Notes: generated from the sequence alone by a model not told the origin. Shown: positions 14,873 to 60,700, numbered from the stretch's first letter. The stretch: DNA of 64,000 bases from Trichoplax adhaerens (GCF_000150275.1 NW_002060947.1:1233199-1297198), one strand, 5' to 3'. Numbers and translations are program-made.

Positions 14873-15479
14873 TTACGATCTTTCGAGTTAATCTTAAATG
14901 GGAATTTTGCAAAGTAGAGATTGAATCGATTGAAGGTGATCGATGTGGTGTAGAATAATATTGAGTTATGGTTGATCGGTTTACTGTGCGTAGTTTCTTC
15001 TCGATGATTTGATCTCTTATTACGGCTCTTCTTGGATGGATATTACATTCATTGGCTTACTTTTACAGTCAATTTTAAAACTTGCAGCGAACCATTTAAC
15101 TAGCATCTTCCGCTTGCCCCAACCAGTACTGCATTAGTGAACATTGCTGACTGACATCAGCATGTTCGACATTTCCACCAGGTAAAATGGTTCCCTTGCA
15201 ATCGTTAACACTTCTAGAAGATTGACTGACTGCTCGGTTCTATTCTACATATTCTTGTGAAGGAAAGCCTATTCTAGGTTAATATTTAGGAGCTATTTTG
15301 CACTTTTTTGATCTAGTCCTAGCAACTTTGCTGCACCTCCGCCTGTCCACGATACGTTCTATACGAGTACGTATGTCAATCTACACACGTCAACATGCAG
15401 TCAGCAGCAGCTTGCGACGTCATTCATTGAAGTTCAAGTCTTGACAAGTCATCCATCATTCGACTCATCAACAAGTCTG

Positions 15480-16040
15480 CAATGTACTGTACACTGTACA
15501 CTGTACACTGTGCAATACTGTACAGTACTGTCCACAGTGTACAGTAAACACACAGACTGTGCACTGTGCACTGTACTCTACAGTACAGTTTTCGAACTCT
15601 TCATGGTCTGGATGAGTCCGGATCAGATCCAGCCCGGACCAGACCTAGGTCTGAAGGATAGAAAGCAAAGTGTACAGTACTGTACAGTACAGGACAGTCA
15701 ACATACAGTACTGTACAGTACAGTACAGTACAGTACAGTACAGTAGTACCGTGCAGTTCAGTACTGTACACTGTAAAAAAAGGACAAAAACATTGGAGGA
15801 CTAGTAGAAGATGACCTTTTTTCTAAGTTCTAGCTGTACAGTACTTGGAGATCTTCCTTGGTCTGCAGACCTTGGACGGTTAGACCAGAACCAGACCATG
15901 AAGATCTTGAACCATACTAACTGTACAGTGTACAGTGTACAGTACAAGTACAGTACAGTACTGTACAGTACAGTAATTCAATCATTGCACCAATTTACTG
16001 TACTGTACTGTACTGTACTGTGTACACACAGTACACACAC
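15480..16040. repeat. ACAGT/ACTGT pentamer and ACTGTAC heptamer microsatellite-rich tract in the divergent RECQL5-importin-alpha intergenic region
   Basis: A pure (CAGTA)n run at about 15716-15745, (ACTGTAC)n near 15485, the reverse-complement (TACTG)n run at about 15997-16020, and many scattered copies continuing through 16460-16700 and importin-alpha intron 1. Confidence 0.9.
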
Positions 16041-16849
16041 ACTTCCACACTCTGGCACTCACAGTCAGGGTCTAGACTCAGGGACTCCTTGCTAGCAACC
16101 CGCCGTCCGTTATACTGGACTGGACGGAATGACTAACGTAGCCATACAGACTCCTACTAACATTCCACTGCCCATGTGGCATGTGTCAATGACACAGCAC
16201 TCTGTGATTGTGCTCAGGTGAACGCCATCCCTACGATAGAGGCTATCGCTTTATGAAAACTATTTTCCATTGAATACGATAGCAAAGCACTGCAGGAATA
16301 AAAATAAAAAGCTAGATGTCAAGGTGAAAGGCAGCAACTACTAAAAGAAAATCATTTGGGATCACGGTTCACTGTCAATGGGTAAGGCAGTAATATAGAG
16401 ATCTTCACGTCCAGCCTGGTTTTTCTTGATGGACCACTACAGAACCCCAATGGTCCACACAATGTCGAGTACAGTGTACAGTACGTAGTCTTGGATTGTA
16501 CCGTACTCAAGGACTTTTAATAAGAGAATTTCTCTTGAGAAAATCTCTCCAATACCGTACAATACTGTATTGTCCATAGCACTGTACATAGTACTGTACA
16601 GTGTACAGTACTATGTACTGTACTATGATCCACACACACTGCCATTGCCGCGCGAGGGTTACTACAGTACCGCACTACACTACTGTATGACCAGGGTCGA
16701 CTGTATATAGACTCAGCCTTGCCGGGTGGATTGACGAAAAGGCAACTTTGAAAAGTAGGTAGCGCATTCTTAGTCAAGGTCGATATCACGGCCATTGCTC
16801 TTACAGCCATCATCAAGATACAAATAGTTCACGGATACTAGAAATCACC

Positions 16850-19800
16850 ATGTCGAGTGACCAGCACCGTTGGAAAAATTACAAAAATAAAGGGCTCGAT
16901 CAACGAGAGATGCGACGTCGTCGCGAAGAAGAAGGAGTCCAGTTACGAAAAGTCAAGCGAGACCAACAGGTAAAATAAGTCATTTCATTGTCAAGAATAT
17001 CATTATGATACTGTGATGTCCAAGTGTCCCTATTTGGTTATTGGACGATAGAATTCAGTGCAGCATTGCACTCAGACTACTCCAAACTTCCTATTGAATA
17101 TCAAGTGAATATTTCAACTAGCGTTACTTTATCATAAGGGCATTTTGAAGATGTTATTGGCACAAGCCGGCCACTTGCATTGTTATTATTGGCAGTGTGC
17201 GTACATTTTATAAAAACGTCTTGTTGTTAGCCCAAACATTCGATTCATTTCATACAGTATTCATAATACTGTAGTAGCCATGTTCCTTGCATGAATCAGC
17301 AAGTGAAATACTCCGGCGGGTAGAGACTTGCTATGCTATTACGAACTTGCAGTAACTATGACTTCAAATAGACGATCAATCCAATAGCTAGCGCCGTCAT
17401 CAAGACAGTACTGTAACACTTTCTAATTTTAACACATCTTGTTATTGATTAACCCTTGGAATTTCGTGTTGGACAGTCAGTCATGTACTATGTATAACGC
17501 TTTTGTAGCATAGGTACATAGACTTAGTCGGGAATTGACTTGAAATTAGTGTATCGAGTTTCGACCAGGATCTCCAAATCAATGACCTCCTAGCAAGATG
17601 ATGTACACTGTACTGTACAGTATAGAAATTTGTATTACTTATACACCAGCACGCTTGGTCAAGGACCAGTAAGGGTTCCTTACGATGCATGAGCAAATAA
17701 GGCCCATGACATGCAGCTAACTGTACGGTAGTGATCGTTTTTCTCGTTGTCAATGCATGGTAACAAAGAGTATAGAATCACTAACTACTTTTACCCTCAG
17801 AGACGGAAAATTCCCCTAGAATCGTCGATTACTGTATAAATGAAATTCTCAATGATTAATTCCAATTTTTTTCTATTTCTGTGTACGGTACACCGATCAA
17901 TCGATCACTTCTCGACTAGAACTTATAGTACAGTACTGTGATTGTGTCCACTTGAAAAAGGAAACCTACAGTACTTGGCGACCACCCATGTGGTACAATG
18001 TGCTACTGTAGTCATTCTTAGGGTTTTAGTAGTAGCAGTATAGTCAGTGCAATTACACTAGCGTAGTACAGTATACTGTATGGGTACCTATGCTATCAAG
18101 CAGTCAGTACTCGGTACATTTTGAAGCCTGTTGTTTTGGAGGATTCCTTGCGTAGGCAAATACGTTTACTGTATCGTTTGAGGAGACCATAAACGACTCA
18201 TAATGATCATCCGACCTTAATTTACCTTGTGCAAGATTTCAGTCTAGTAGTATCGAATAAGCTGGATAAAGCATATTTTTTAGTACAACACAGCAATGTC
18301 TTGGGTGATCTAAAACGACCTAATTGCAAGCTGCATCAGTAGGAGTACTACACTGTGCGTAACTTAGTCTTATACCGCTCAGTCATTTGACTGCGTACAA
18401 AGCACAACTGTACTGCACAGTACATTGTACAGTACTTCGTACTGACGTACAGTACAGTACTGTACATCACTGGAGATCATGTACTGTAGTGACCAATTCT
18501 GATTTGCCCTGACTGTATCTGGCATACTCTACACTACTGTATGAATAAATATACTTTGGGGATACTATTTTCCAAGTAAAATAGTGGGCTTTCTTCTTGG
18601 TATTATTAGGTGGCAAGTATTGATTCTTGTACCTAATTTACCAGTAGAAATGATGATCTAGCATATAGCACCGAAACTCGTGACACACTTTTCCTGTAAC
18701 TGTCCACTGTATCTGCAGTATAAACTTCCGAACAAGATTGCACAGGGTTAGGGGTAGAGGTAGAAGTTAGGAATGAGCAATTAGAGTTAGCTTATTTGAT
18801 TCCATTGCTATAAGTGACGATTGCGATGATTTGGACCAATTAGCGCTTGATTGGGGTACGGTAATAATGTACAAGTACACTATTTCGTGCAGTTGGTGTT
18901 AGTCGGATATCTTCCCTCTATGCTATAAGAAAAGGCCAACAACCTAGCCAAATCGAACTCCTTAATCGAAAGGAAGAACTGTTCAACTAATCACACTGCC
19001 ATTACTTTGATAATCCTTTTAGTTGAGTAAGCGACGACAAGTTTCTGCAATGGTGGATGATGACGATACCGGAATGGAAATGAAATCGGAGATATCTCCA
19101 AAGGTAAAGGCAAAGTAACGCAACTGTCGAATTTCTGTCGTTTGTCTTGTCTATATTGTTTCACCTACTTACCACAAAGACTACATAACCACTTGTACAG
19201 ACATAGTTACTAGTAAAATGTTATCATTAAATGAAATCAAGTGAAGGTTTCTAATTGGCGAAATTTGTATTACCTTCCGTAAATTACAGAGGATAGCAAC
19301 AAATTTCTTAATGTATTAGTATCATTAATTATATACTGGTTATCTTGGCAGGGTAAATACGATTTAGAGTCCATGATGTCAAATATGTATTCTGCCGATT
19401 TGGACTTGGTATTAGAAGCTACTCAAAAATTTCGCAAGCTATTATCGAAAGGTTCGAATTTAAAGTGTTACTAATTCAGTCTGCTATGTAGTATCTACAA
19501 TAACATCACACAATGATGAAATGATCTTGAGCATCACCTTTCGTCAATGTTACGAATAATAAACGCCTACGTTAGATTTGTCTGATTATATGCTGATATA
19601 AATCGGTATAAAAATGATCGCAATATCACCCATTGCTTATAATTATAAAATATGTCATAAGCTTTGCGACCTGTTATCACTGGGAAAATATATTGGGTAA
19701 TTATTCATATTTGTTCAATTTTAGAACCTCATCCACCTATTCAGGAAGTTATTAACTTAGGAATTGTACCTAAATTGGTAGAATTATTGAAATGGCAGAA

Positions 19801-21825
19801 TGATACTTTACAATTTGAAGCTGCCTGGGCGCTAACTAACATTGCCTCAGGAACTTCACTCCAAACTGCTACAGTATTACAAGCTGGAGCAGTACCTGTC
19901 TTGATAGAATTACTGTCTAGTAGTAACGTTGATATTCAGGAGCAGGTAAAACTATCAATGATAATTAATTACACCGTAGTTGTACTGCCAATGTCATGAT
20001 CATGTCAGTCTTATTAATCTACTTTTAATTTTTATCAATTAGTCTGTATGGGCTTTAGGGAATATTGCTGGTGATAGCACTCCATGCCGTGATCATGTTT
20101 TAGGTCTTAATATTCTACCTTCACTACTGCAGTAAGTCTGACATCAGCGTCATCAAATACTACTAACTTTTCGCCCAATTAACCGTTCTCTTAATAGGAG
20201 AGAAATCGCTAATAGATATCATACAATTTGAATAGACGGTTTCGTGTCTTAGATTTCACTGAACAATTGATCGTGCAATTGACGCAGTGATAGACTTCTA
20301 ACGCTGTACTAATGTTTAATATTATCTAGATTAATTGCCAGTGCGCAAAAGTTATCATTAGTTCGTAACGCTGTATGGGCACTTTCTAATCTTTGCCGTG
20401 GAAAAAATCCTTTACCTGACTTTGGAATTGTACGTAGGATAGCTTTGTTTGTTATTGAAGAATGAAGTTACATATGTAGAAAAACGTTTCCCCTTTTAAT
20501 GTTATAAATTGGTAACTACACAATATACAGGTATCAATTGCTCTACCAACATTAGCGAGACTATTATATGCTGACGATAAAGAAGTATTAGCAGACACAT
20601 GTTGGGCTCTATCTTATTTAACCGATGGTCCAAATGACAGGATACAGAAAGTTATCGAAGTTGGTGTATGCAAGCGATTAGTCGAATTATTACTGTAAGG
20701 ACAATTAATACGGAAACTTCGTCAAGTTGTTTGGTCGTGTATTCGTTACAATGTGTTCTTTTCTTATTAGACATACGCACTCTTCGGTGCAATCAGCTGC
20801 TTTAAGAGCAGTAGGCAACGTAGTCACTGGTGATGACGTCCAAACGCAGGTAATTCCAATCTCCATACCGTTTAACAAGACCTATAGCAAGTAACTAAAT
20901 TAAATCCGAAAATCTGTCCTATTTAGGTAATAATTGAGTGCTCCGCTTTATCCAACCTTTCGACCTTATTGGACAGTTCCCGAGACAGTATTAAAAAGGA
21001 AGCCTGTTGGACAGTATCCAATATTACGGCCGGAAATAAGACTCAAATACAGGTAGCCTAAAGTAATCAGCGCAATATTTTTTATATCTAGTGAATGATA
21101 CTAGCGGAAACTATACTGATGTATTGCACTGATGATAATGATGCATTTATGTAACTAGGCGGTAATAGACGCTAATATCATACCTAAGCTTATTCATGTT
21201 GCAAGTATGTCCGACTACAAAACACAAAAAGAAATTACTTGGGCCATTACCAACGCTACAACAGGAGGAAACGAACAACAAGTGAGGTAATGACGGTACT
21301 CTACTTGTCAATATTTAGTAATTTCTGTTCGTGAAGGAAATTATTCAAGACTTACGTTATATTAAATTTTATCCCTTAGATTTATCGCTAGTCAGGGAGC
21401 AATTAGGCCTCTTTGCGAAATACTTGGCGTAATGGATGCTAAAATTGTCGATGTCGCTATGACAGGACTTGAAAATATATTGCGTGTTGGAGAACGCATT
21501 GGTAAAGCCGAAAATCGTCCCAATCCTTACGCTATTTTGGTAGAGGAAGCTGGAGGTAACTAAACAGACATGTAAATCGTCCTCTTAATATTCTGCCTAG
21601 AATCTAAATCAGATTTCTAATATTTATTGTCTATCAGGAATTGAAAAAATAAATTTTTTGCAACGCCACGACAATCAAACTTTATATAAGAAGGCATACA
21701 ATATAATCGATAAATATTTTCCATCAGATGAAGCTGATGGTGAAATAACACCAAGCATTGATCCAGCTAACAGTCAGTACTCCTTTGGTAATTTCAACGA
21801 ACATCATGGTAATTTCGACTTTTAA
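16850..21825 (+). CDS. KPNA: Importin subunit alpha (karyopherin alpha, alpha1/KPNA1-5-6 subfamily), intact
   Basis: Exon 1 (16850-16969) [40 protein letters not shown] followed by LSKRR gives a complete IBB domain of alpha1 type. ARM repeats carry [64 protein letters not shown] and KEITWAITN. Ends ...[12 protein letters not shown]...GNFDF* at 21823-21825. Confidence 0.96.
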
Positions 21826-24254: not shown

Positions 24255-27200
24255 TCAAATTTGTGCTTTATGAATTAGAATATCTCTTTTGGGCTTTTCC
24301 TGTTGTATCAAATACATAAGAAACAAATTAGATATTGATGATCAATTTATGAAAGTATGAAGTAGAGGACAAACTTAACATGATACGTATAGAATAATAA
24401 AATGATAATATTGCATTTAAAGTACCAAATATATTTATATGCTCGTATAAGTCCCATTGCTTAGATCTTTAGTTATCACTAAGGTTACATGAATGTAACT
24501 GAAATGAAACTTGTAAAGACATTCAGGTAAATCCGCTATTATTTTAACATTAATTATAATTTTTGTTAACAAACAAGGAATAGTCAAATTTTAGAGCTAA
24601 TGCAATTCAGTCTATCAACTGATTTAGTAGCAAAGTTAATGCTAATAACAGCAATTCACATAATTCTCGAAGTAGTTTAGTTAATTTTTAACGCTATAAG
24701 TGATAAATGTAGGCTGTTTTTGTTAACTTCATTGTAACCTATCCTATCTCTAAATAGTGTTCAAAACCCTATTCAATAATTAAATAATTATAACTTACCG
24801 TAAAGAAATTTTTATATATTATTTCCAATAAGAGAAAAACGTAACCAAACGATAAACCAAGAAATAACGTCATAAAAATACCAGCTAAAAAATGTAATCC
24901 AATACCGCTATTATTGCCTGCTACTGCACCGTTATTATCACATTGGCTTCGATCAGTCCACCATTTTTTACGCAAATAATCCATATATCCACGATCTTGT
25001 AATGTTAAAATAGCCAAACTAAAATTTTTCACATATGGTGAACCTTTCTGTAATCCGATACCAAGTGGGCTATGACCAAATGGCTTACCAATAGTCAGTA
25101 AATTACATGGACGACGTAAAACATAATAATCAGCTGTAGCTTTATCAATTAGAAATGCGAACGATCCATTGCGAGTTCGTTTAATACCAGCTTGCAAAGT
25201 CGGCATTAGGCCATTACTCTCTTGTATTTTCTTCCATATTATTTTATCGACCGGACGACGCGATGAATTAAAATGGTAAGAAGTTTGTCCACCGCGGATA
25301 GCACCAGCAGCATAACTTGAATTAGATAATTCAGTTAAACTGTGGATAATAGGTTTCATTGGCGTAACCGATAAAAATGCAGTTAATTTAGCAGTATAAG
25401 TTTGAGTAATTATTAATACAAAAAACCACCATGAACCACCTAATATGCGGCTCGATAAGCCTCGAGGGGTTGTCTCGGAGCCTTGTTGTAATAAAGAGCT
25501 ATAAGTAAACCACATGCTGTTATAAAATGTTTGATCTTGTCCAGCTTCACGAACGTCTTCATTTTTGCCCCAACTGTATGGACTTAAGCGATTATACCAA
25601 CCAAGCAGTAGGCTCACTAATACCGACGATATAACTAGTGCTATCCAAACTTCGGTTTTAAATGGGAAGAAAAACTGGAATAGATCAGGTTCACGCTGGC
25701 CAGGATTGCTAATAAGAGCAGTTGAATGAGAGTATAAAAAAGGAACTGTAAAATCAGCCACAGTTTCTCGGATAAGGCTAATTGTCAAGTCAGCTAGGGC
25801 AACATCTGCTTTCTGATAAAATAATAACGAAAACATGTAGATATAACTTCTTCCTTACGAACAACAATTGAATGTAATATCAGCGTTAATATAATTTTTA
25901 TCATTATAAGTAAAGAAATTGTAACTCAATAATATTGTTTTTAATGGAACTTATTGAAGGTAATGATAAATTGATTTACTATCATTAATGTTCTATTAGT
26001 TGGGAACGATATATGCTACGTTACAGAATTACGACTAAATTCAATATATTCTACTGGTAAAGAAATAATAACTCAATAATATTATCTTTAATTAGATGTA
26101 TTGGCGGTAATGATGTATTAATGCACCATAATGAATATTATTCTAGTTGGAAACGATACATCGTAAATTATATTAATATTTCTAAATTCACTATATATAG
26201 TCTGCGCCGCTTCAAGGATTGATGAAAGGCAAGCCATCATCGAATTTGGGATATTTTTTCGATAGGAGAATTGTTTAAGAGTTTGGTATTAAATATTCTT
26301 GCTATCATACCATAAATCATAGCATCATTAACTACTAAGACTGTATACCGCATTAGATATACGCAATTATCGTAAAGGTATTAATAATTAATCATATGTT
26401 TTTCCTAATATTAGCAAAAATTGAGAAATAGACCCTGTCTTTACTCTTACCATAACTAGATTAGAGTGATCATGTGTAAAACTGAATCCGTACATGCATG
26501 GAATTGATAAAGATCACAACTAGAATGCAATAATGATTTACCTGTTCAACAAGCTGCCCGATTAAACCAGACCAGGAGCCATTATCATATCTAGCACCAT
26601 ATTGATGATCTTCGACAAGGTATAGTTCATAGTCTAGACCTAGCATTTCCTTTATTGCATCCATAATATCAATACAGAATCCTTCATAACTTTGACTGCC
26701 AGTAATTGGATCATAATCCTTGGTAAATACGAATGGCCTAGCCTACATTCAAACGTAGGTTTAATATTTTCGTTAGTTAGAATCGATATCGAGAGAAAAA
26801 TACAAATGGAAAGAAATTCAATTCGCAGCTTCAACTATTTCACAATAAAGTAGCTATACCAGCAACCAACCGCTTTACAATTTGCAATCCGTAATAAGTA
26901 AATAAATACTAACTATTGTGATAGAATACGACTAAATTATAAGGCTAGAAATATTTTTAATACTTACTATTATTGTCACCACTTTTAAGACTCTACGTGG
27001 AACATTAGACGTCCAAATCGCTTGATGTGAACCTGAGTAACGCGTTGCAATCTAATTTAAATATATCATAGAAATTAAAACCACGTTAAATGTATATTTC
27101 AAACATAATTTGATAAAAATGATTAAATTGACAAATCTGCAAATAAAGAGTATGAGTAATATGATTGTAAACTTACCACTGCAGGATTAGTCATAATTGA

Positions 27201-37968: not shown

Positions 37969-40900
37969 AAGCCTGGAGAAACTCTACAGACAACCAGCAA
38001 ATTAAGAATCACGCGTGTTGCGCGCATACAGCTCAGAAAAAAAGAGGTAACTTTATTGCAAAATTCTCAATGTTCATTATAAAAATTCAGTTATATATAT
38101 AGACTTTGATAAAGTGATATTGTAAGATAAAGTGTAGCATGTAATATTGGAGAGTAAGAGTCAGAAATTTCTGTAAATGCAGTGATTGGAGCATTTTTTG
38201 CTGCCAACATCTACTAATTGCCTAAAATCACTTTCTTACTAGCATATTTGTCTACAAAATATAAATATAATTAGAATAACTTTGATTAAATGGTTGCAGA
38301 ATATTATACGAGGTGACCTTGAATTACATTTAAGAAATTTACATTCCAACGATGAAGCTTTAGTATTGAGTGCAGCTAAGAAAATTCTACAACCTACGAA
38401 AGGTAGATAGCAGTGATCCAATTATTTAATTTCTGATTCATTATTTCATACGGATATTCATTTTAAATAATTAACCTTAATAAATTTTACAAGATACAGT
38501 TAAGCCCAAATTAATTTGATAATACTTAATTTAATATTTCAAAAATGGTGTCAAACTATATCCAATGGATTCAATATCGTCTTGATATAAACTTGCTAAT
38601 AATGTAATGCTGGATTAAATTTTAGTTAGTTGTTAGCACTCTACTAGCCAGTATAACAATACAGTATTAGAAAAATGATTTAAATTCAAAAATAGAAGCT
38701 AAATTAAGAGGTCTTATCTGTGTGATCAGTAATCATTCCATAATAATAATAGGAATTAGTTTTACTTTTATACGATGATCTCATATGTCAATTTTGATTC
38801 TGTTCAGTATGGATAAAGTAATGATAATAAAAATTAAGAGCTTAAAGACTAAAGCTTTATTGGACAAGATCTAGTTCATTAAGAATCTATACTTTCAGTT
38901 CTGATAGATATCTAACTTTTTTCTACTTTTATAGATGCAAAGCCNNNNNNNNNNNNNNNNNNNNNNNNNNNNNNNNNNNNNNNNNNNNNNNNNNATAAAA
39001 ACAGGGCTATTTCAACTATAATAAAATTGACGTACACGGCCAATATCGATTTCCAAGTAGCGGTGTGACGGTAACTTAATTAAAAATGGAGCCTAGCCCT
39101 GCTATAATACGCTATTTGTGCTATAAATTTCAGGCAATTCGCGCGTTAAACAATTTATCATCAATTTGTTCTGAGGCCCGCAAAGGACTTGATAATTCTA
39201 TGCAAGAATTTTTGGAAGTGAGTGAATGATGATTATGGACATTAAATATCTTTAAAAGTATTTAGTATTCTAGTGTGATGATACGTTATCGAGAACATAA
39301 TTCGTTATAGATCCGAGCTTATTCCTTTTAACTGTGATATCACCTGGCTTAATTTAAAAGTTTGATTTATAGTATCGCGATATCTATTCATATTATTAAA
39401 ATTTAGTTTTCAGGATTCGAAAAACTTCAAAAATCCTAGAATAAAACGTGAAACAGCTAGATTAATTGTTACTATAGCGGAGACGGAACACATTCTTAAA
39501 TATGTAAGTTTAACCTCGCTATAATTCTTTAATTTGGTATTTATTCATTAAAAGTCCGTTTGCAACTTTTACCCTATAACCATTTCTATCTAAATCTAAT
39601 CATATTAACCATAATAAAGAGTCCAATATACTATTACTGTATATTTCTATGTCAGTATTAAAGGTTTCTATTTGTATAGTCTATTGCTTAGTAAACATCT
39701 ATTCGAAATATTAGATTACTGTTAAAACAGATATTATTCATATCAACTGTGTAAAATAACCTACTGTCAGCTATAATTCATTTTAACAATTAATACCCTT
39801 GTACCAAATTAGCGTGATGGAAAATAGATGGATGTAGACGAAGGAAGTATTTTTGTACCTTATTATTCAATTAGGGCGATAGTATCATTAAAATAATATA
39901 TAATCCCTGAATTAATCGCCTTACATTACAATTTGCAATCAAATTTTCTATTTACTGCTAAATATGAAATACTAGTAAAACAATTAATTCCAGTCTTGAA
40001 CTTTTACCCTATATTTCGACGTAATCATAATCAAAAATCTACGTTATAATTTTATCCCCAGCCTGGTGCTGTATTGAGGACCATACGCAATTTACTAGCA
40101 GCATCGGATAAAGAAACAAAAATAGATGCAATCCGTGCAATATCACTAATGATTCAAGGAAGCCATCAGCAGGCTGAACTTACTGTCGAAGTTATTGCAG
40201 ATTCCCCTCTCACCAATTTAATATGGTAAATTACATAACAAAATTCAAAGCTAGTACAGCTATTGCATTCCGTATTAATGTTTCTATGGTGTTTGCGAAT
40301 TGCCCGAGTAAGGGTAAGGGAGAAGTATTCTCGCACCTGTTAGACTTATTTTGTTAAATTTCGGAGCAAAATGATGATACAAATCGGGTGAAATATCCCA
40401 CTCGTATAATGTTAATAAATCTTCCAATAACAAACCTTAAATTAGAATTGAATTAATTAATAAAAATATATTTTATATACGAACGTGGGATATTCGAAAC
40501 TATGGTAAATCTATTCGATACTATCGAAGATGACAAAAGAAACCGCTTCTGTTATATATTCTCCAATATAGCTGCTAGTACGAAGCATGAACATGTCTGG
40601 GTAGTACTATAATAAAAGATCTATTGCATTTTCAGCAGAATAAATTTATGTCGTATACGAAATCGCAAATAATGTTTTCCCTCAACTAATTTAATGGAAA
40701 TTCATATGCATACGCTAAAGTTCCTTTAATTGAGCTATTTTGGTTAATAGGCTATAATAAATCCTAAAACTATGCAAAAATTGGTAAATTTGGCCAGAAA
40801 TTGCAGCAAAGAAACTTAAGAAAGCATCCTTTTTGCGATTCAGAATATAACATCGGTAAAAGACGAATACTTCCCATTTGCAAGGTCAAAAAATTAATTT

Positions 40901-41476
40901 ACTGAATCTCTGACGCTATATAGCAGGATTGACGCGAAGTGAAACAACAGTCTCGAAAGTTAATTTTTAATGTAGCCAAAATTATGTGCTGACGGCACAT
41001 ATATGATGGATCAAGGCTTTATTCAATATTTATCAAATTCCTTAAAAGTCAATATCCACAACAAGAAATTTCTAACTCTGACTTTGCATGGAATCCAAAA
41101 TATTTTAATTTGTGGTAATAAAATTTGTCAGGAAGAACAAATCTCCAATCCGTTTATAAGTTTATTTGAACTAGCCGGAGGTACACTTCTTTCGTTACTT
41201 ATAATATTTTACAGTACTTAGAGGCTTTAATAAGTTTATCATCAGATATTTGTTAGCGCATGGAACAGTATTTATTAAAACTAAAATAAATAAAGTGAAA
41301 TCTAACTTGTACTTTGATGTAATGAATACTATTTTACATCAAGGAATAGTAAACCTGAATCATATTCGAGAGAATGAAGATATTCAAGAAAATGAAGATA
41401 TGAAGATATTGTCGGTAGAGCTTTAACGATATGCGAGAGATATTTTTCATCAGATTTGAATGACAGTCGATATTAG
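37969..41476 (+). pseudogene. Highly diverged importin-alpha paralog, probably a pseudogene; contains an N-gap; further 5' exons possible at about 37100-37820
   Basis: Exons are colinear with the intact KPNA: ...RVARIQLRKKE; NIIRGDLELHLRNLHSNDEALVLSAAKKILQPTK; AIRALNNLSSICSEAR; LRTIRNLLAASDKETKIDAIRAISLMIQG; RFCYIFSNIAAS; YMMDQGFIQYLS...NPFISLFELAGG. Lesions: in-frame TAA at 40817-40819, AC instead of AG at the acceptor 40997-40998, and an 8-bp duplication frameshift at 41393-41408. Confidence 0.82.
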
Positions 41477-44636: not shown

Positions 44637-47600
44637 ATGAATGAAGGAACAGAATATAATCCGACTGAAGAAGAATACGATCGTAATGGTAAGAATTAGA
44701 CTTCAAGTTTTAAAAAACACGTTCATAATCAACTGATATTTACAATAATGTCATGACTTAAGAAATACTAGATGAAAAATATAATGCCTTAAATATGATA
44801 AAAGAAAGTACAGCTGGTAAGTAGATAAGTTATACTGATGGAAAGTTAAGTTTATTTTTTCATACGAACATATTCATAATCATACTACTAATAAAGAGAC
44901 TAGGAATGAAGAAAAGATTTATGAGGCCAGTGATATTGGATACGGTCCAGAAGGTAAGAAAATTTAAAGCAGGGTCTTGAAAATTTTAGTTTAACTTTGA
45001 TATGATCAGAATCTTTCAATAACGACAATTTACAATACTTTTGTTTAAAGTATCCAATCCACACTTAATAAGACCTACCTACTATTAGCATCAATCGTTA
45101 TCACAACAACAGAAAAGATTTCAAAATTATAGCGACATTGAATAATTCCACAATAAAACACGGAGTGACCACATTATAATTCTATTTATCAGCGAAATCG
45201 CCGACCTAATCTCACTAACCACAACTAAATAATGTTCTAAATATGGGGTCTTATTTTTGGCTCTAAATAACTTAGGGCCACTATTGCAGGAGCATAACAC
45301 TAGTAGGCAGGATTCTGTAATTTATGAACTTTAGTTGCTATCACTATTTGCTTTAGATTTTATTTGTGAAGTAATAAAGATTTACAGAATAATTTAAATA
45401 TCAGCCACATCGCGGTGAATAAACATGTATTTACAGCTTATCATCATGCTTTAAACTTATAATTTATTAATACAATCAGCAAAAGTTATGCGAGATCGAT
45501 TTATTACATTCGAATAATTGGATTGTAGATCCTCGAAGCTACTTTGTAGATATTTGCAATCAGCTTGGCTCATTTTGGCAAGATATTGCTGCAGAGTTAG
45601 ATAATACTATCAATATCAATGAAATTTACGAAAGCTACGATCAGAATTATCAAAGAGCGAGGGCAGTTTTGAAGCGTTGGTATCAAAATAATTCAGAAAA
45701 TGCAACATTTGATCGACTTATCGAAGCACTGATCAACATTGATCGAGGAGATATGTCAGACCATTTAGGTAAAACAATAATCATGATAATAATCATATGC
45801 CAAGGCTTAGTATTTTCCTGTTTTCTTAATTAATCACACTAACTATTATACTAAAGTACATAAACAACAGAGCTTGATATTTGTTTTATATCCGGAAGAA
45901 CAAGATTTGCCATGTATTAAATAAACATCATCGTGTAATAGCAGATCGCAATTAAATTGATTTTAAGCAATATGGATCGCATTTTAGTAATAAGATGAAA
46001 TATCCATCTTGCAATACTAAGTATAAGATAAATTAAATTACAGAAATTGCAATACAAGTTACCTGCTATTTCTTACTACTTTACCAAATCTACTTTAATG
46101 CCTATCCTATATCTGCAAATGCAGATCAAGCTTAAATGCTATATTTATTTATTTATATATATTTATATGTTATACGTATAACACCTACAATATGCTCTGT
46201 AAACCTTATACGCGTGCATTCAAACCTCAAAGATGGAATTTTATTTCAGCTTGTTAAATTCGTAATTAGTGCTTCTAAATAATATTATCTTGTACTTATA
46301 AACTATAAATAGATTTCGATCGGCAGATAATGAGATCAATACAAGGAAAAGGATTAGAAATAAGAACACGGAAACGAAATAAGCTAGTAAGCTGTTGAAA
46401 CAGAATTCAGGCCTATCTGCAAATTAAATTTATGGTTTAGCACCGACACATGCATTGTATCAAATAACTTCAATAGTGTAGTCTTTACAAGGATAACGTT
46501 ATCTATAAAACATTAATCTAAGCCAATATTATAAAACAGCTTCGGAAATCATTAGATCAATAAGCAATGTAATAGTATTCTGATATTATAATTTATAAAT
46601 GCCGTAGCTAAATAGACTGCAAGATGAAACATTTTCAGTAGTTGACGGCGTGGGATTTATATCCGAGAGGCCATCAAGAATTTCTACTCAGGTAAATACA
46701 CAAGATTCTTCTCCGTTACTTTAAACTTTTCCTACGGTACTCAGTGCTTACAAAATATCTCAATATTAATATACCTTTATTAAAAATTAAATTATACGTA
46801 ACTCTAGAGCGAAAAGGAGCTGAAATCTATCATGAATAGTATTCAAAAAAATGATTCAGATACTGTTCTAGATGCTACTCGACGTTTACGAAAACTACTA
46901 TACGCAGGTATACAAGATATAGCATTTACCTAAGTACGTCAAACAGCAAATTAGTATTTTCGCGCTGATTTACAAAACCTGACGAACTATTATTGCAATC
47001 CCTAATCACCGCGTATACAACCTTACTTCAAGAATGCGACAAATATATTATAAAGTTCATATTTCGTGCATTTACTACGTCTACTATTTGTAATTCTTCA
47101 ATCCTGGCAGCGAAACAGTACTTATACACATTTCTATAAATATCATAAAACATAAAATCAGAGTGAATTTTTGTAAATTTATAAAATTTGTGAATGGTTA
47201 GTAATCAATTTACTTCCCAATCAATATTGTTAAAGTCAACTCCTTAAAGTCGCCAATAATTCTTACGGCTAATCATCACCAGTTATGAGCTAGGAATAGC
47301 CCTAACTTGCAACAAGGGTCGAGAGAGTATTTTCTATTCTACCCTACTGTTCTTTGGATTACCAGTCAGTTAGTATTCCCAGACAGATAATGTTTAGCAC
47401 CGTGAGACCTTCAAACTATCTAGAAAATCACAATCTAATTTATTATGGGCGAAGCCTCTGTTTACGTAGGTTTCGGTACCTAAAGCCAGATTAACTACAC
47501 AAGTCACCTCGTCTATTAGAAATTAACCAAATTAATACTCTAAAGAGCCTGTATCTATACAGATTAAACACAGTCTTTTTTTGTCAAATTTACTGTATCA

Positions 47601-50293
47601 GTATTAAATTAATCAATTCTTAATAATAGTTTAATAAACACATATTAGGCTATTCTCCTATGATATTTTCTCTAAACTTAGAAATTATACTTTCAACTTT
47701 AAGATCCTTGGAGGTGATAGATATAATGCAGTTAAGCTAGTTGGCAATTACTATCTTAGCCTATCTAATCCTAAATTAAGAATTATTTAATAAGACATCA
47801 ACTGTTATCCATTAAAGTTACAATTAAGGAGACCATAAGCATTTCCCAGATATAAACAAATATAGAACGTAACATAGAAATAAAGTACATATCACGAAGA
47901 TTACTTTTGTGACATTACCATATCATTGAAGTGGTAAAGAAAGTATATAAGATCCGACATTAAATAGTATACTGATATTAAATTCATTTGCAGATCCATA
48001 TGTTCAAGATATCCTGGATTTAGACATCATAGAAAGACTTATCGATCTATTGAACGATGATGGCCAACAAGCTCAGCTGGAAGCCACGTCAATTATCGCA
48101 ATTATTTCCTCTGGGTCATCTATCCAAACTGCTACTGTTTTGCAAGCTGGTTCTGCACCTTTTTTAATCGAATTGCTTTCTAGCAGCAATACTGATATTC
48201 AAGAGCAGGTATTTTGATAGTATTCCAATCAGAATAATTGTCGCTATGATAGATAAATATCACGGCATTTTGTCATCTGTACCTCTATGCATCGTAGTCA
48301 GTTTGGGCTTTAGGAAATATGGCTAGTGAAAGTACCCAATGTCGTGATTACCTAATAGAGCTCGAGATTATGGAACCTTTGCTAAAGTAAATTTTATACC
48401 GAGATAGAGTGATCGTTTTCGGCATAAACCTTTCGATAGCACTTACAGAAGTAGAAATAAAGAATTTTAGCTTAATTCTTCATCGTACTCTAAAAGATAG
48501 TTTACAAACATTTAGATTAATTAAAAACAATCCAAGTTTACCCTTATTACGTAATGCAATATGGGCGCTTTCAAATCTTTGCCTAAGCTTTCATCGTATG
48601 CCGGACATGGATGAGGTAGGTGATTACGATGAATATAGAAAGCATCAGATTGGCACTAAAATATGTAATTATAACGTCTCACCAGTTGCTGCATATTGGA
48701 TAAATTAAATGAATACAATATGCTTTATTTCATACGTAGGCTTTTACTTCACTGCCAATCCTAGTGAAACTGTTGTCTCATGAAGATAATGAAGTTTTAA
48801 TTGACACTTGCACGGCTTTATCCAATCTAGCAGATGGTATCGAGATTTATATGCCTGTCCATTATCAAATAGGAGCTGTTGTTAACGCTGGAGCATGCGA
48901 ACCTTTAATAAAATTATTGCGGTAAGAGTAGCAAAACAGTTCACACAGGTCAGAGAGAATTTTTAGCAGACATCAGTAATTCTAAAAGCTTGATCTATCC
49001 TGAAAATATAGACATGAAGATGAAATAGTTCAATCTACTTCCTTGAAGGTAGTGAACAATATATCTATTGGCACTGAATCGCAGATCCAGGTAAAGCATT
49101 TTAAAATCCTATCCCTGCTATCAACATAATAAGTTAGATGGTATTCCATCACAAGTTATAAATTATAGTTTTGTGTCTTTATAGACACTGATTGATGCCC
49201 AGGTCTTGCCAAGCCTTTTACATCTACTGGATTCATCAGATGACGTTATTAAAATGCAAACATGTCGAATATTATCGAATTTTGCAGCTGGCAATAACAG
49301 CCAAGCTCAGGTAATTGGATAGGCTGAGATTGAAGCTCAAACAGAGTATTTTCAGTAATATAATTTAAATTAAATATTTTATCTTCTTAATATTTTAAAA
49401 TAAACCATTATCAATAAATTAAGTACTGTGTCTAATTCAACTCATTCTATCATTCTTATAATGTGTCAGTCTATAACATAATCAATATTTGCCTACGATA
49501 TTTCCATCAATTATTATATTCTACTGCGGTATAAGTCAAAAATAAACTTAAAAATATGTTGCATCGGAACAACTATCGGACTGTTAATTACTTTACATAA
49601 GATGATTGAAATTTAAAATTATTGCTACTTTTATCAAACTAGGCAGTACTTGATGCTAATATTTCTCCTAAACTTCTCATGATACGGGATACGGTCGATG
49701 CTAAAACCCAAAATGAAATCGTATTGGTTTATGCTAATTTAATCGAAGCAAGCACTAAACAAATTAAGTAAGAACATCGACAGATTAAGATTTTGTGTGC
49801 GTTTATTGGGAGAGCTAAATTAATAAGACTTGATACGCGGTTAATTCGTTGATTTCCCTTTGTTATATTAGAAATTTCGTCGATCATAAAGTCCTTAAAC
49901 TTCTATGTGATGTACTTACCATATCAAATACTGAAGTTGTACGAGCCTCGGTGCAAGCCTTAAGTAAAATGGTTACCACTGGTAGCAAATCGGTAGAAAT
50001 TGATAAGATATCTGATGAATTTCTAAGCTATCTTGAAGAAATAGGAGGTATCTTATTATGTAGACTTAAACGCAGCGTTAATAATTTAGCTTACAGTTGA
50101 AGCATTTAATATCCCATAGTCTGTCGACAGTTATGATAATCAAATAAATTGGAATGACTATACCTCTACTGATTTATATCGCTTAGGAATTACCAAAATA
50201 AAGGCTCTAATCAATCATAAGGACGAAAAAATTTGTGCAGCATCACAGAATATTCTCGATATCCAGTTTGCATCCAGTAAAGATAATAAGTAA
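44637..50293 (+). CDS. Death domain-importin-alpha chimeric protein (acidic N-terminus, death domain, degenerate IBB, full ARM repeat array); reading frame open; N-terminus may extend further upstream
   Basis: Phase-compatible GT-AG exons: 44637-44688, 44763-44816, 44897-44953, 45529-45768 (death domain) and 46313-46386 (IBB remnant). Eleven further exons from about 46608 match the intron positions of the intact KPNA, e.g. [28 protein letters not shown] / SVWALGNMASESTQCRD / LRNAIWALSNLC / AVLDANISPKL. Stop TAA at 50291-50293. No stops or frameshifts found. Confidence 0.85.
45529..45768 (+). other. Death domain-encoding exon (240 bp, phase 1-1)
   Basis: DPRSYFVDICNQLGSFWQDIAAELDNTININEIYESYDQNYQRARAVLKRWYQNNSENATFDRLIEALINIDRGDMSDHL has the death-domain pattern ICxxLGxxWxxLAxxL...IxxI...LxxW...ENATxxxLxxAL...RxD, as in FADD, RIPK1 and ankyrin death domains. 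Confidence 0.9.
47288..47313. repeat. Interspersed repeat fragment in an intron of the chimeric gene; second copy at 63959-63984
   Basis: AGCTAGGAATAGCCCTAACTTGCAAC is identical at both sites and followed by similar .AGG...GAGAGT sequence. Confidence 0.65.
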
Positions 50294-52960: not shown

Positions 52961-54493
52961 TCACAATCGATCACGTAAGTAGATTTCTACATTATGTAAT
53001 TTTAATGTTAGTGGAGCACTGTATGATATTTCTTTTTTAAAATCAGTTATGAAATCAAATCGATGAACTAGTTTAGCTATTGCAATCTTTAAGAAATTCG
53101 TTGCAAAATTTTGACCTATACAATTTCTTGCACCGGCCGAAAATGGAATATAAGCAAATGGATGGCGATCACCAATATTTTCAGGTAGAAATCGAGACGG
53201 ATCAAATTCGTCTGGGTGATCCCAAACGTTTGGATCACGATGAACTATAAATCCTGAATAAATTATAATGGTTCCTTCAGGAACGATTTTGCCATCTATC
53301 TGTAGATCTTTATTGGCAGTTCGAGCATTAAAAGGTACAGGTGGGAAAAGCCGCAGAGCTTCTTTAATGCATAAACTAGTATATTTTAACTGCGACAAAT
53401 CATCCCATTCAATTTGCGATTTATTTTGTAATATGTTTGAAACTTCGTCCCTGATTTTACTTTGGTGCTCAGGATATTTTGCTAAACAATATAATGTAAC
53501 AGATAATGTACCGGCTGTAGTATCATGTCCAGCAAATAAAAATGTATCAACTTCATTTCGTATGTCAATTAAACTTAACTTTGTTCCATCTTCGTAACGT
53601 GCATTTAATAAAGTATCGAGAAAATCCAGTGATTTTCGCGATTTTACTTCATCATTTCCTACATTTTCAAGTTCTGCTTGGCGCTTTCTTATAATCCCTT
53701 CAGTAAATTCATGCGATACATTCACTTGCTGTTGAAATTGCTTACCCGCTGATGTGAAATTAAAGTAGATCCATGGATTATGATGTAAAAGATTGTATCC
53801 ACGCTTAACGATTAATTCTCCTAACGTTTGAACAGAATTGATATAAGGATGATTTTTACCGCTTGTTTGACAGTTTAAATGCATTGAAAACGCACATGGT
53901 AAGACGACATCGAGAGTGCAAAGACTGGCATCATAATATAAATCTAATGGCTCATGGCGTTCAGCCGATGCGGACCATTTCTCGATTAAAGTATCTGCAG
54001 TTTCGTTATAGATATTGATATAAGTCTTTAAGATATCGAAATGAAATGCTGGAGTGAGTAAACGTCGATTTCTAGCCCAATGATTACCGTTGGAAGTCAA
54101 TAATCCATGTCCAATCCAATCCGATAGAAATCGGTATAAATTGCTAATTTTGGGTGGTTCAGCTAAGATCACTTTTTTAATAACATCAGGATCATAGCAA
54201 ATAAATGCTGGCTGCGTTGAACCGTACCAAAGCATGAAATATTTATCATATATCTTGCTAGTATCAATCAAGAACTTGAAATATTTATCTGCACCGCCTA
54301 GCTGATGAGTGTTGCCAATAAGAAATCGATGCGGTGGTGCATTAAATTTGCTGCCATAATAGACCAGTCTTAATCGCTTATAAACCGATTTACATAATTT
54401 TTGCAGGAATAAACCAACTATGCAGCAAATAATAGAGTTGAAAAGGATGTATTTATAATCTAGCTTGGAAGATTCCAAAAACGGTAACTTCAT
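52961..54493 (-). CDS. Cytochrome P450, CYP4 clan, single exon, 510 aa
   Basis: N-terminal anchor, WIGHGLLTSNGNHWARNRRLLTPAFHFDIL, I-helix EVDTFLFAGHDTT, ExxR KEALRLFPPVP, FDPSRF and heme motif FSAGARNCIG. Confidence 0.96.
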   Translation of the reverse strand: MKLPFLESSKLDYKYILFNSIICCIVGLFLQKLCKSVYKRLRLVYYGSKFNAPPHRFLIGNTHQLGGADKYFKFLIDTSKIYDKYFMLWYGSTQPAFICYDPDVIKKVILAEPPKISNLYRFLSDWIGHGLLTSNGNHWARNRRLLTPAFHFDILKTYINIYNETADTLIEKWSASAERHEPLDLYYDASLCTLDVVLPCAFSMHLNCQTSGKNHPYINSVQTLGELIVKRGYNLLHHNPWIYFNFTSAGKQFQQQVNVSHEFTEGIIRKRQAELENVGNDEVKSRKSLDFLDTLLNARYEDGTKLSLIDIRNEVDTFLFAGHDTTAGTLSVTLYCLAKYPEHQSKIRDEVSNILQNKSQIEWDDLSQLKYTSLCIKEALRLFPPVPFNARTANKDLQIDGKIVPEGTIIIYSGFIVHRDPNVWDHPDEFDPSRFLPENIGDRHPFAYIPFSAGARNCIGQNFATNFLKIAIAKLVHRFDFITDFKKEISYSAPLTLKLHNVEIYLRDRL

Positions 54494-57700: not shown

Positions 57701-60700
57701 TCATGCAGTAGTCAAGTCCCTGTAGAAATCGTTTGTTTCTTTCAATTTAGCAATCAACTTTCCTACCAAGAACTTAGCCTAGAATTGAATACTGTTGGAG
57801 TTATTTCTACAGTATAAGAACCGAAATCGAAAATAACTATTACCTCATTTCTTAGATGATAGTAATGCCACGCCATTTCAGCAAATAGAATAACATATCC
57901 AATAAAAAAGCCAATAAATAGAGTGATGAATATTCCGCCTAAATATCTTATAGTCATTTGACTAACATCAGAATCGATTTTGCTGGAGGATGTACATTGG
58001 CTACGATCACTCCACCACTTCTTTCTCAGATAATCAAGATATCCACGATCTTTTAATTTTAATATGGCTAAACTAAAATTTCGAAGGTAAGCCGAGTGCA
58101 TCGGTAAGCCGATTCCGAATGAGTTTTGATTAAAAGGTTTGCCAATAATCATTAAATCGCAAGGAAGTCGAAAAGTAGTATATTTCGCTTTAGGTCGATC
58201 CAATAGAAAAGCAAATGAACCTTGATGGACATTTTCTATACCTTCGCTAGTATTCTCGCATAACTTGCCACCTTTTACTATCTTATTCCACAGTTCTTGG
58301 TGCACCGAAGACGTAGAGCTTTTTACAAAATCTAAGGTTTGACTACCATTAGTAACGCCGACACGGTATTGGTGACTATTAGCTAATTGATGAATTGAAG
58401 AAATTGTAGGATTCGTAGGTGTCACCGAGAGATGAGCAGTTAGCTGAGCTGTGTACGTTTGAGCTATAATTAATGCAAAAAACCACCATGATAATCCTAA
58501 AATTCGACTAGATACTCCACGAGGTGTAGATTCACAGCCTTGTTGAAGTAATGCTGCGGATATAAACCATATGCTATTGCCCAGTGTTTGATCCATCCCA
58601 GCCTCACGAGCTTGATTATTAATATTTCCCCAGCTATACGGACTTAGATAATTATAAATAGCCAGTAGCAAGCTAACTCCAACAGCAGCGATAATAACCG
58701 ATATCCAAACTTCTAAGGTAAAAGGATACAAGAACTGAAAAAGATCCGGTGATCGCTGACCAGGGTGCCTGAGTAAGATAGCCGTGTGTGAATAAAAATA
58801 AGGCACAGTAAACTCAATCACTCTCTGTCTTTCTCGACTGATAGTAAAATCTCCTAGTGCAGCATCGCCTAACTGAATTTGATCAGATACGAGAAATTAG
58901 ATAAGATTTATTTCAAACAACATTTAATGGAAGCAATTATTAAGTTTCGATTTACAAGAAACTCCCTTTGATTGTCAGCAATTCCTTTGAATATATCATT
59001 TTTCAATATCAAAATAATAAGATGCTATAGAAACAGTATCATCTCAAATTTAGAGATCTCTTAAAGCAAAATTACTCATATGCTGCTATTATACTAGTAA
59101 AAGAAAGTATAGCTGTTAATTGTTAAATTGAACAGCGAATAAAATGAACTTAATAGGATTGGTATCTCATATAAATCTATATTGAACTTGTCTTAAGGAG
59201 ACTAAATAATTTATGTGTTTTGAATATCGTTTGTGTATGGACTAACCTATTAATAGTATATAAAGAGCTCCATAATTATCTAGCTAGAGAGGAAGTAGAT
59301 GAAACTGCAGTGAAAGTACTTTTTTAACAAAGGCTTTTTACCTAGTGTGGAACGTTTCATAAGTATTTAACTGACTAAGGTAGTGTAACTAGGCCTTAGT
59401 GACTAGAAACGCATATTAGCAACCAACCTAGAACTAGCTATACTTTCAATTGAAAGGTATCTGTGTTGCAATTGCGGTTATGATAATTAATATGTAATAT
59501 TATTATAATCTATATCTATAAGATCATCCTGGATTTCATCGGAATAATAATATTGCAGGTAATCGCCGTTATATAATAACTTACATGATCTTGTAATTGC
59601 CCTACCATACCAGTCCATTTACTGTTATTCAACTGACTACCGTATTGTCCATCCGGTGATACATATAACTCATACTTAAAACCAACAATTTCACTGATAG
59701 CATTAATTAAATCGATGCAGAATCCTTGATAAGATGGCTGACCAGTAAAGACATCATATTCTTTCATGAAAACAAATGGTTCAGACTAAATGTAATATTA
59801 AGCATTTCATCGATCAAACATAATTAGCTAGTTTCACAATTTAACCAAACGTAACCAATTTCTGTAGGCACGAAACATATAAATTATTTCTGAAACGTTA
59901 TAAAAACTACTATCTTACAGAAATCTGCCATTTATTTACTAATTTATAGCATCAAATTAAGCGAATATACGGTACTAAAGATAGAACTTGCCAAGACTGT
60001 GACGATTCGAAGCTTGTTTCTTCCGTCATTGGTAGGCCACTGCACAGATTTAATATTCGAGTCAAAAGTTGCGATCTAAGCAGATAGAAAATTCTATTAG
60101 AATCCATATTATAACGAGTGACCAAAATTGATGGAAATAGCCTACTATCTGAGGAGTAGACAATATGTTTTCAAAGGTGGAATTGATAATTTCAAGCATA
60201 TAGCCTTTTCTCTTCCGATGAGAATCAAACTCGACTACTCCCGTTAAGCCACGCGTTTTTACCTGAATGATATAAATTAATTTAGGAGATCAATAATTAT
60301 AATGGTCACAGCGAACAAATGCAATGATATCAGTAACTGTTGGGAAATATATAAAGTATTCATTAGCTATCATTGCTACAGTATAAGATCATCACTACAT
60401 TCAGAATTAGATTAAGATACTGATTTGATGTTGATCTATAATTATAATATCAAATTACATACTCTTCTTTTTAAGTATAATAACATGGTAACTTACCCGC
60501 TGAATTAGCTGAATTACTTCAGAATATGCAAATGGTTTGTCGGTTAAACAGTGTGGTAATAAACTGGGATTGGTTAATAAATTTATAGATTTATACAGCC
60601 TATACATCTTGTCTGTAATGTCCGCCATCACTTCAACCGAATCAAAAACTAATTTTGCACTAACCTATATTCATTAATTGAATAGAAAGGTAGACTAAGT

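Follow-up and report, generated by a model that had tools for sequence, protein, structure and literature searches.

A candidate Death domain-importin-alpha fusion gene in Trichoplax adhaerens, probably encoding a scaffold outside classical nuclear import

We describe a gene of Trichoplax adhaerens in which a Death domain (DD) appears to be joined to a duplicated importin-alpha. The gene, here termed DD-importin, occupies positions 44637-50293 on the plus strand of a 64,000-nucleotide stretch of genomic DNA (NW_002060947.1:1233199-1297198; hereafter the window, to which all unqualified coordinates refer). With a probability of about 0.6, we read the locus, TRIADDRAFT_56253 (orthologue RDD41061.1 in Trichoplax sp. 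H2), as one real, selectively maintained gene of the Trichoplax lineage whose product would act as a DD-tethered scaffold rather than in transport. Importin-alpha is among the most conservative of eukaryotic adaptors, and Death domains serve in apoptosis and innate immunity as assembly modules. A first-pass annotation of the same DNA had proposed the fusion. The architecture that it claimed is encoded by the sequence, and two public gene models make the identical join.

The gene model, assembled by hand from GT-AG sites and open frames (as was that of the importin-alpha gene, KPNA, that neighbours it in the window), comprises 16 exons totalling 1860 nucleotides (nt) and 619 codons, with a sole stop codon at the end and GT-AG boundaries at all 15 introns. 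The predicted protein of 619 amino acids (aa) begins with an acidic tail, followed by the DD (residues 55-134), a helical, basic remnant of the IBB domain (135-165), a disordered linker and a ten-ARM solenoid (186-619). G+C content is about 30% across the region. Exon 1 (44637-44688) supplies the ATG and 17 further codons of the acidic N-terminal extension, ends in phase 1 and starts where the H2 model starts. The extension continues through exon 2 (44763-44816), which is acidic and helical and present in both public models, and through exon 3 (44897-44953), which supplies the donor for the splice to the Death-domain exon, exon 4 (45529-45768, residues 55-134). Exons 2, 3 and 4 (54, 57 and 240 nt) are all symmetric, in phase 1-1, and skipping any one of them keeps the frame; a DD-less isoform produced by exon skipping is thus possible.

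The identity of the Death domain is secure. Positions 45531-45767 on the plus strand match Pfam Death (PF00531) with an E-value of 1.9e-13 and 50.8 bits against a cut-off of 22.6, over profile positions 7-79 of 86, which bears out the claim of an 80-codon death-domain exon at 45529-45768; in the full H2 protein the domain scores 47.4 bits, likewise above the Pfam gathering score (22.6). The exon had been said to be absent from the open reading frame (ORF) track, and indeed the list of ORFs starting with ATG, GTG or TTG holds only its tail. Its frame is open over 120 codons, as against 0.079 stops per codon in the introns of the gene. AlphaFold2 (AF2) predicts residues 56-135 as a compact all-helical bundle with per-residue confidence (pLDDT) of 87-98 and helices, assigned by DSSP, at 56-78 (the first two merged), 84-90, 94-108, 115-124 and from 128 onward; we judged the six-helix bundle from these helices and the pLDDT.

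Among solved structures, the nearest Death domains by sequence are those of FADD (E-value 8e-5) and of ankyrin-1, ankyrin-2 and ankyrin-3, all with E-values of about 1e-4. The description 'FADD-like' holds to this extent, whereas the closest Death domains overall are Trichoplax paralogues at 40-47% identity, including an H2 'Apaf-1' (Death, NB-ARC and APAF1_C) at 47%. In addition, Pfam finds no DED in the H2 protein RDD41061.1, so that it lacks the DED plus DD architecture of FADD. At least 110 Death-domain exon matches occur in the genome, mostly with an unbroken frame across the match (this and the other genome-wide searches used the 105.6-Mb assembly of 1414 contigs, in which the window is G000:C1410:1233199-1297198). 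None of nine other Death-domain matches that we scanned has Arm or IBB. Capture by exon shuffling would agree with the symmetric phase (1-1) of the DD exon.

Downstream of the Death domain lies the importin-alpha paralogue that had been proposed, recognizable by Arm repeats exon by exon and, in its body, 39% identical to the gene at 16850-21825. In the H2 protein Pfam Arm reaches 3.9e-44. The solenoid begins in exon 7 (46808-46907; ARM1) and proceeds through exon 8 (47994-48208; ARM1-ARM3, Pfam Arm 1.5e-08), where the H3 helix of ARM2 is without both Trp and Asn, to exon 9 (48298-48386; ARM3) and exon 10 (48516-48615; ARM4), each of which keeps its W..N pair. In exon 11 (48740-48921; ARM5, Pfam Arm 1.5e-12) the Trp is replaced by Thr, and there is a 6-aa insertion relative to canonical sequences. 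Exon 12 (49012-49090) encodes ARM6; exon 13 (49185-49310; ARM7, Pfam Arm 3.2e-06) and exon 14 (49643-49767; ARM8) keep the Asn, with Trp changed to Arg and to Leu, respectively. Exon 15 (49872-50047) covers ARM9-ARM10, and exon 16 (50187-50293) the end of ARM10 and the stop codon, apparently without the canonical acidic and aromatic C-terminal tail. Exon 10 has two in-frame acceptors 15 nt apart: the H2 model takes 48501, adding five residues, while 48516 is used in the T. adhaerens model and is the better fit to homology with the neighbour. The two may represent alternative splicing.

The fold of the importin-alpha body is predicted with high confidence. With an input alignment of importin-alphas and short DD proteins, the AF2 model of the whole protein has a mean pLDDT of 85.8, the ARM body lying mostly above 90. 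Foldseek places the solenoid on delta-IBB structures of importin alpha7, alpha5 and Kap60 with TMt of 0.88-0.93 and a root-mean-square deviation of 2-3 Å over about 428 columns. Pfam Arm, AF2 and Foldseek thus all point to a complete ten-ARM importin-alpha superhelix.

The working surfaces of that superhelix have fared very differently from its fold. The IBB is required for importin-beta binding and for autoinhibition, the Trp/Asn ladder for binding of classical nuclear localization signals (NLSs), and the KRRN motif and C-terminal tail are tied to the cycle of cargo release and export. Exon 5 (46313-46386), the homologue of codons 17-40 of the first exon of the neighbour, carries the IBB remnant: it keeps the RTRKR basic patch, has lost the RRRR run, contains an in-frame Met at 46331 and has no Pfam match. 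Exon 6 (46608-46691) is the second IBB-homologous exon and encodes the linker, with NRLQ at the KRRN position and disorder predicted past residue 163. In the alignment the RRRR run has become MRSI and the autoinhibitory KRRN has become NRLQ, RTRKR being the only patch kept. AF2 draws a single helix over residues 128-164, in which the last DD helix runs into the IBB remnant, followed by a disordered linker at 163-182. The Pfam scan that the annotation had suggested accordingly returned Death and Arm but not IBB (PF01749), which is absent from the H2 protein at E<=1e-3 and present in almost all of the 119 other importin-alpha relatives listed. Of the H3 ladder, ARM3 and ARM4 are intact, ARM2 lacks both residues, and Trp is gone from ARM5, ARM7 and ARM8, so that the ladder is incomplete at both the major (ARM2-4) and the minor (ARM7-8) NLS site. 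At the C-terminus, Arm_3 reaches 26.6 bits against a cut-off of 28.8, and the tail past ARM10 is absent from the alignment.

These losses are not evenly spread. At 90% conservation or more, 19 canonical importin-alphas define 165 columns, of which 152 are kept in the neighbour and 88 in DD-importin; Leu is retained at 20 of 23 such positions, as against Trp at 2 of 6, Lys at 1 of 8, Arg at 5 of 13 and Asn at 5 of 11. The retention of the Leu columns indicates a hydrophobic core that is intact.

The source of the importin-alpha body lies close by. At 16850-21825 on the plus strand the window carries an intact canonical importin-alpha of the alpha5/6/7 type (12 exons, 523 aa), which shares 50-60% identity with canonical animal and fungal importin-alphas. 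The ARM part of DD-importin is 39% identical to this neighbour and 31-35% identical to other importin-alphas, and tblastn with the open frames of the neighbour gave collinear matches at 47993-49762 and weaker ones at 38261 and 41000. The shared intron positions that had been claimed were found in full: 11 of 11 fall at the same alignment column and in the same phase. DD-importin has four further introns, all in phase 1, located in the N-terminal extension and flanking the 240-nt DD exon. An IQ-TREE analysis (LG+C20) places DD-importin as sister of the neighbour, within the animal clade of alpha5/6/7 type, with support of 90/99 when grouped together with a further divergent locus, L005 (described below), and 70/98 without it. 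At 4.4-4.7 substitutions per site, the terminal branch of DD-importin is 17-30 times as long as that of the neighbour (0.14-0.28), and a long-branch caution therefore applies to its placement; this caveat is offset by the adjacency of the two genes and the 11 common introns, which agree with the tree. The sequence evidence indicates that DD-importin is a tandem duplicate of its alpha5/6/7-type neighbour.

Despite this divergence the reading frame has stayed open, as the annotation had argued in favour of selection. When the coding sequence of the neighbour was allowed to drift, with the base composition of introns, down to 39% aa identity, 200 neutral simulations accumulated 12-40 stops (mean 26.6), whereas DD-importin has none; by the intron stop rate of 0.079 per codon, 49 would be expected over 619 random codons. 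Between T. adhaerens (H1) and H2, DD-importin differs at 3 of 619 residues. A decayed importin-alpha copy upstream differs at 5 of 59 (Fisher p 2e-4) in its sole annotated exon, which matches one place in the T. adhaerens genome; the H2 remnant sits on another contig and is a likely orthologue only. We interpret these results as indicating that the frame of DD-importin is held open by selection.

Both sequence and annotation of the locus are already in the public record. Searching the DD exon against 1.84 billion representatives with phmmer returned one near-identical match, RDD41061.1, a 624-aa protein of Trichoplax sp. H2 labelled 'Importin subunit alpha-7', with its DD at 56-134; its 90% cluster includes the 760-aa T. 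adhaerens protein XP_002112339.1/TRIADDRAFT_56253/B3RXL6, which UniProt names 'Death domain-containing protein'. Our 619-aa model equals the last 619 residues of that protein, residue for residue. The further 141 aa of this Joint Genome Institute (JGI) model trace to two sources, an exon (41003-41179) belonging to the decayed copy and 5' sequence that is read through. The H2 protein differs from that of T. adhaerens by three substitutions and by the use of acceptor 48501. The H2 models were built by MAKER from Trinity/Cufflinks transcripts and T. adhaerens UniProt proteins (PMC6057997).

The locus is also represented in a placozoan cell atlas. Najle et al. 2023 (PMC10580291) list Tadh_TriadG56253 in Table S3B with the Pfam string Death/Arm/Arm/Arm_2 and assign it, with a membership of 0.642, to the weighted gene co-expression network analysis (WGCNA) module Tadh.palevioletred3, which maps in Table S3A to a multi-species lipophil (digestive-cell) module. 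Inclusion in that co-expression analysis required a fold change of at least 1.25 in some metacell, and bacterial-response genes sit in the fibre-cell module, to which DD-importin is not assigned (PMC10580291). Our literature search (Trichoplax, death domain and importin) found no paper discussing the architecture or its accessions, and a paper on placozoan immunity, another on DD shuffling in amphioxus and a preprint on placozoan secretory cells make no mention of it. The suggestion that a DD-importin-alpha is undescribed thus stands as regards papers and falls as regards the UniProt name of B3RXL6 and the Pfam string in Table S3, both of which are public.

A search with residues 1-190 returned only the H2 protein, PF00531 occurs in none of the 119 other importin-alpha relatives listed, and the ESM Atlas yielded ordinary Arm/IBB clusters only, with scores of at most 0.86. 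No other protein combining Death with importin-alpha was found in the searches that we ran.

A single mRNA holding both the DD exon and the importin body is strongly suggested by the matching phases across the join, the missing ancestral start codon of the importin part, homology to the neighbour that starts at acceptor 46313, and the presence of the join in both public models. Both junctions that had been put forward, 44953->45529 and 45768->46313, are GT-AG, in frame and exactly those of the 16-exon model, and from these features we infer that the DD exon is spliced to the importin body. Several observations nevertheless weigh against a single DD-bearing gene outside transport. The in-frame Met at 46331, six codons into exon 5 and with an in-frame stop just 5' of the acceptor, could start a DD-less importin paralogue, and the DD frame can run past its donor for 21 codons to a stop at 45831. 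Predictors may then have joined two genes, one encoding only the DD (exons 1-4) and the other a truncated importin-alpha paralogue. Both public models are predictions and are not fully independent, because T. adhaerens UniProt proteins served as evidence for the H2 annotation. Since the atlas counts were made on the whole JGI gene model, they report expression of the locus and are silent on inclusion of the DD exon. If the underlying data are 3'-biased, the signal would mainly reflect the importin end. Protein database searches also found no orthologue beyond Trichoplax H1 and H2. Set against two separate genes, however, the read-through tail is hydrophobic and AT-rich, like translated intron; both the GTAAAA donor and the TAG acceptor are similar to the other 14 splice sites; and the phases match. 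Moreover, the H2 and JGI models agree on the DD-IBB join even though they differ at the start and in exon 10, and 5.8 billion clusters hold no protein or transcript fragment of 66-210 aa matching the DD ORF, a weak argument. On balance we consider a pair of adjacent genes unlikely.

A functionless relic, transcribed but decaying, beside which a DD exon happens to lie by chance, would be in keeping with the very long branch, the loss of many family-invariant residues, the clearly decayed sister copy next door and the scatter of more than 110 DD exons over the genome. Yet neutral decay would have brought 12-40 stops where there are none, none of the 15 splice-site pairs is broken, losses have largely spared the hydrophobic core and the whole solenoid is predicted with high confidence. 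H1 and H2 share 99.5% aa identity in DD-importin against 92% in the neighbouring remnant, and expression varies enough across metacells for assignment to a cell-type module; we find a relic very hard to credit. Continued service in nuclear import is also improbable, if less strikingly so. The annotation had proposed that the protein moves DD partners to the nucleus, which would call for residual importin-beta binding; the complete importin-alpha fold and the W..N pairs of ARM3-ARM4 accord with this, and the RTRKR patch on a helical IBB remnant could still touch importin-beta, a further point against an exit from transport. The proposal is weakened by the absence of PF01749, which almost all of the 119 other relatives listed possess, by the changes of KRRN to NRLQ and RRRR to MRSI, by a partly dismantled NLS groove, by the loss of conserved basic residues (7 of 8 Lys and 8 of 13 Arg), and by the apparently missing C-terminal tail.

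We therefore return to DD-importin as a single maintained gene, whose history can be proposed as follows. The neighbouring alpha5/6/7-type importin-alpha gene would have duplicated in tandem, and the first 16 codons of the ancestral IBB exon would have been replaced by three short acidic exons and a phase 1-1 DD exon, drawn presumably from the genome's own repertoire of more than 110 DD exons. The protein most likely left importin-beta-dependent transport, given that its IBB is no longer IBB-like and that Trp and Asn of ARM2, Trp of ARM5, ARM7 and ARM8, and apparently the C-terminal tail are lost. Rather than a classical adaptor for import, DD-importin is probably a scaffold that binds peptides and is tethered through its Death domain. 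As a cytoplasmic adaptor, it might bind an extended, probably basic, peptide ligand in its remodelled ARM groove, and the DD might dock the ligand-bound scaffold on homotypic DD assemblies. Apaf-1-like DD-NB-ARC proteins are offered as example partners because their Death domains are the nearest relatives.

It is tempting to speculate further that the ARM grooves of duplicated importin-alphas serve as bait for molecules that carry an NLS or target importins and that come from intracellular bacteria or from microbes taken as food, with binding nucleating DD or CARD assemblies with Apaf-1-like proteins and so leading to cell death. Such a decoy for effectors is possible in principle, and we regard it as a long shot. 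Were it true, it would constitute an animal counterpart of plant integrated-decoy immunity, with death-fold-coupled sensors of nuclear import. The resemblance to SARM1 and to integrated decoys drawn in the annotation survives as an analogy and does not extend to membership, as Pfam finds only Death and Arm/HEAT-type domains and no enzymatic or NLR module. Like SARM1 (ARM-SAM-TIR), DD-importin fuses ARM/HEAT repeats to a homotypic assembly domain of innate immunity; unlike SARM1, it has neither SAM nor TIR, carries its assembly domain at the N-terminus and has an ARM body of importin-alpha type.

With its neighbour and the canonical alpha5/6/7 proteins (KPNA1/5/6) it shares the ten-ARM solenoid (TMt of about 0.9 to human alpha7 and alpha5), 11 of 11 introns and the W..N pairs of ARM3-ARM4; it departs from canonical importin-alpha in having no Pfam IBB, in the replacement of its N-terminus by an acidic extension and a DD, and in the absence of Trp and Asn in ARM2, of Trp in ARM5, ARM7 and ARM8, and apparently of the C-terminal tail. 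With FADD, MyD88, PIDD and ankyrin it shares the Pfam Death family, FADD and ankyrin-1/2/3 being nearest among solved structures, but it lacks DED, TIR and ZU5 and has low identity to solved Death domains. The experimental delta-IBB form of importin-alpha, which binds ligands and which importin-beta cannot carry, offers a further parallel: the best Foldseek matches are delta-IBB crystal forms, and DD-importin likewise is predicted to have an ARM body without a functional IBB. It differs in having arisen in nature and in carrying a DD ahead of an ARM body whose groove is partly dismantled.

Invertebrate genomes commonly hold unusual DD combinations. As a maintained natural fusion, DD-importin would exemplify a transport adaptor rebuilt as a signalling scaffold through duplication and exon shuffling, bearing on the origin of new death-fold signalling nodes in early-branching animals by way of one gene, two domains and a defined cell type. 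It also adds to the evidence of wide experimentation in Trichoplax with importin-alpha-derived and death-fold proteins. Its weight is limited in that it is known from two near-identical Trichoplax lineages and that the sequence and domain string were already public.

The window holds a third importin-alpha-like copy. The decayed sister copy mentioned in the annotation is indeed present upstream, at 38243-41218 on the plus strand, as far more diverged remnants found by tblastn: collinear weak matches of 23-35% identity to ARM1, ARM5, ARM7 and ARM9-10 in open segments, with a gap of undetermined bases (N) at about 38950-39000. The 760-aa JGI model erroneously attaches the last exon of this copy (41003-41179) to DD-importin, and the H2 counterpart is a 60-aa ORF, 92% identical, on a separate 25-kb contig. 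This copy is either a pseudogene or a very divergent unannotated gene.

Elsewhere in the genome, about 260 kb upstream of the window, lies L005 (G000:C1410:974700-977500, plus strand), an importin-alpha-like gene of very high divergence, in which profile matches span the full ARM body and most Asn of the ladder are lost; in the tree it groups with the KPNA of the window and DD-importin, on a branch of 6.2. Ten segments upstream of L005 that we scanned gave no Pfam death-fold match. A second divergent importin-alpha-like locus, L004 (G000:C1408:5053000-5056200, minus strand), retains the W..N pair of both ARM2 and ARM3; basic segments resembling an IBB lie upstream of it. A genome-wide Pfam CARD search gave no match near any Arm or importin-like locus, L004 and L005 included. 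Of the other Arm loci, one (L001) is SPAG6-like by eye and two (L002 and L003) are canonical importin-alphas. DD-importin may thus be one case of a wider Trichoplax tendency toward divergent importin-alpha-derived genes, which would make it less singular and the family more interesting.

Around these genes we noted several further features. Low-complexity sequence, which translates on either strand and in several frames into runs of T-V-Q-Y-S type, occurs at 15441-16816 and 17500-18500 and again at positions 1497-1934 of L005; it looks like a dispersed, satellite-like repeat, and in the window it both precedes the intact KPNA and occurs within the first intron (2053 nt) of that gene. Also upstream of the intact KPNA, an exon at 13928-14302 (minus strand) carries RecQ-type helicase motifs, recognized by eye. 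Directly downstream of DD-importin, on the opposite strand at 52961-54493, a single-exon ORF of 510 aa bears the haem-binding signature of cytochrome P450 and appears CYP4-like by eye. Finally, long open exons at 24769-25836 and 57763-58821, both on the minus strand, encode paralogous segments resembling ionotropic glutamate receptor channels, with a pore motif recognized by eye.

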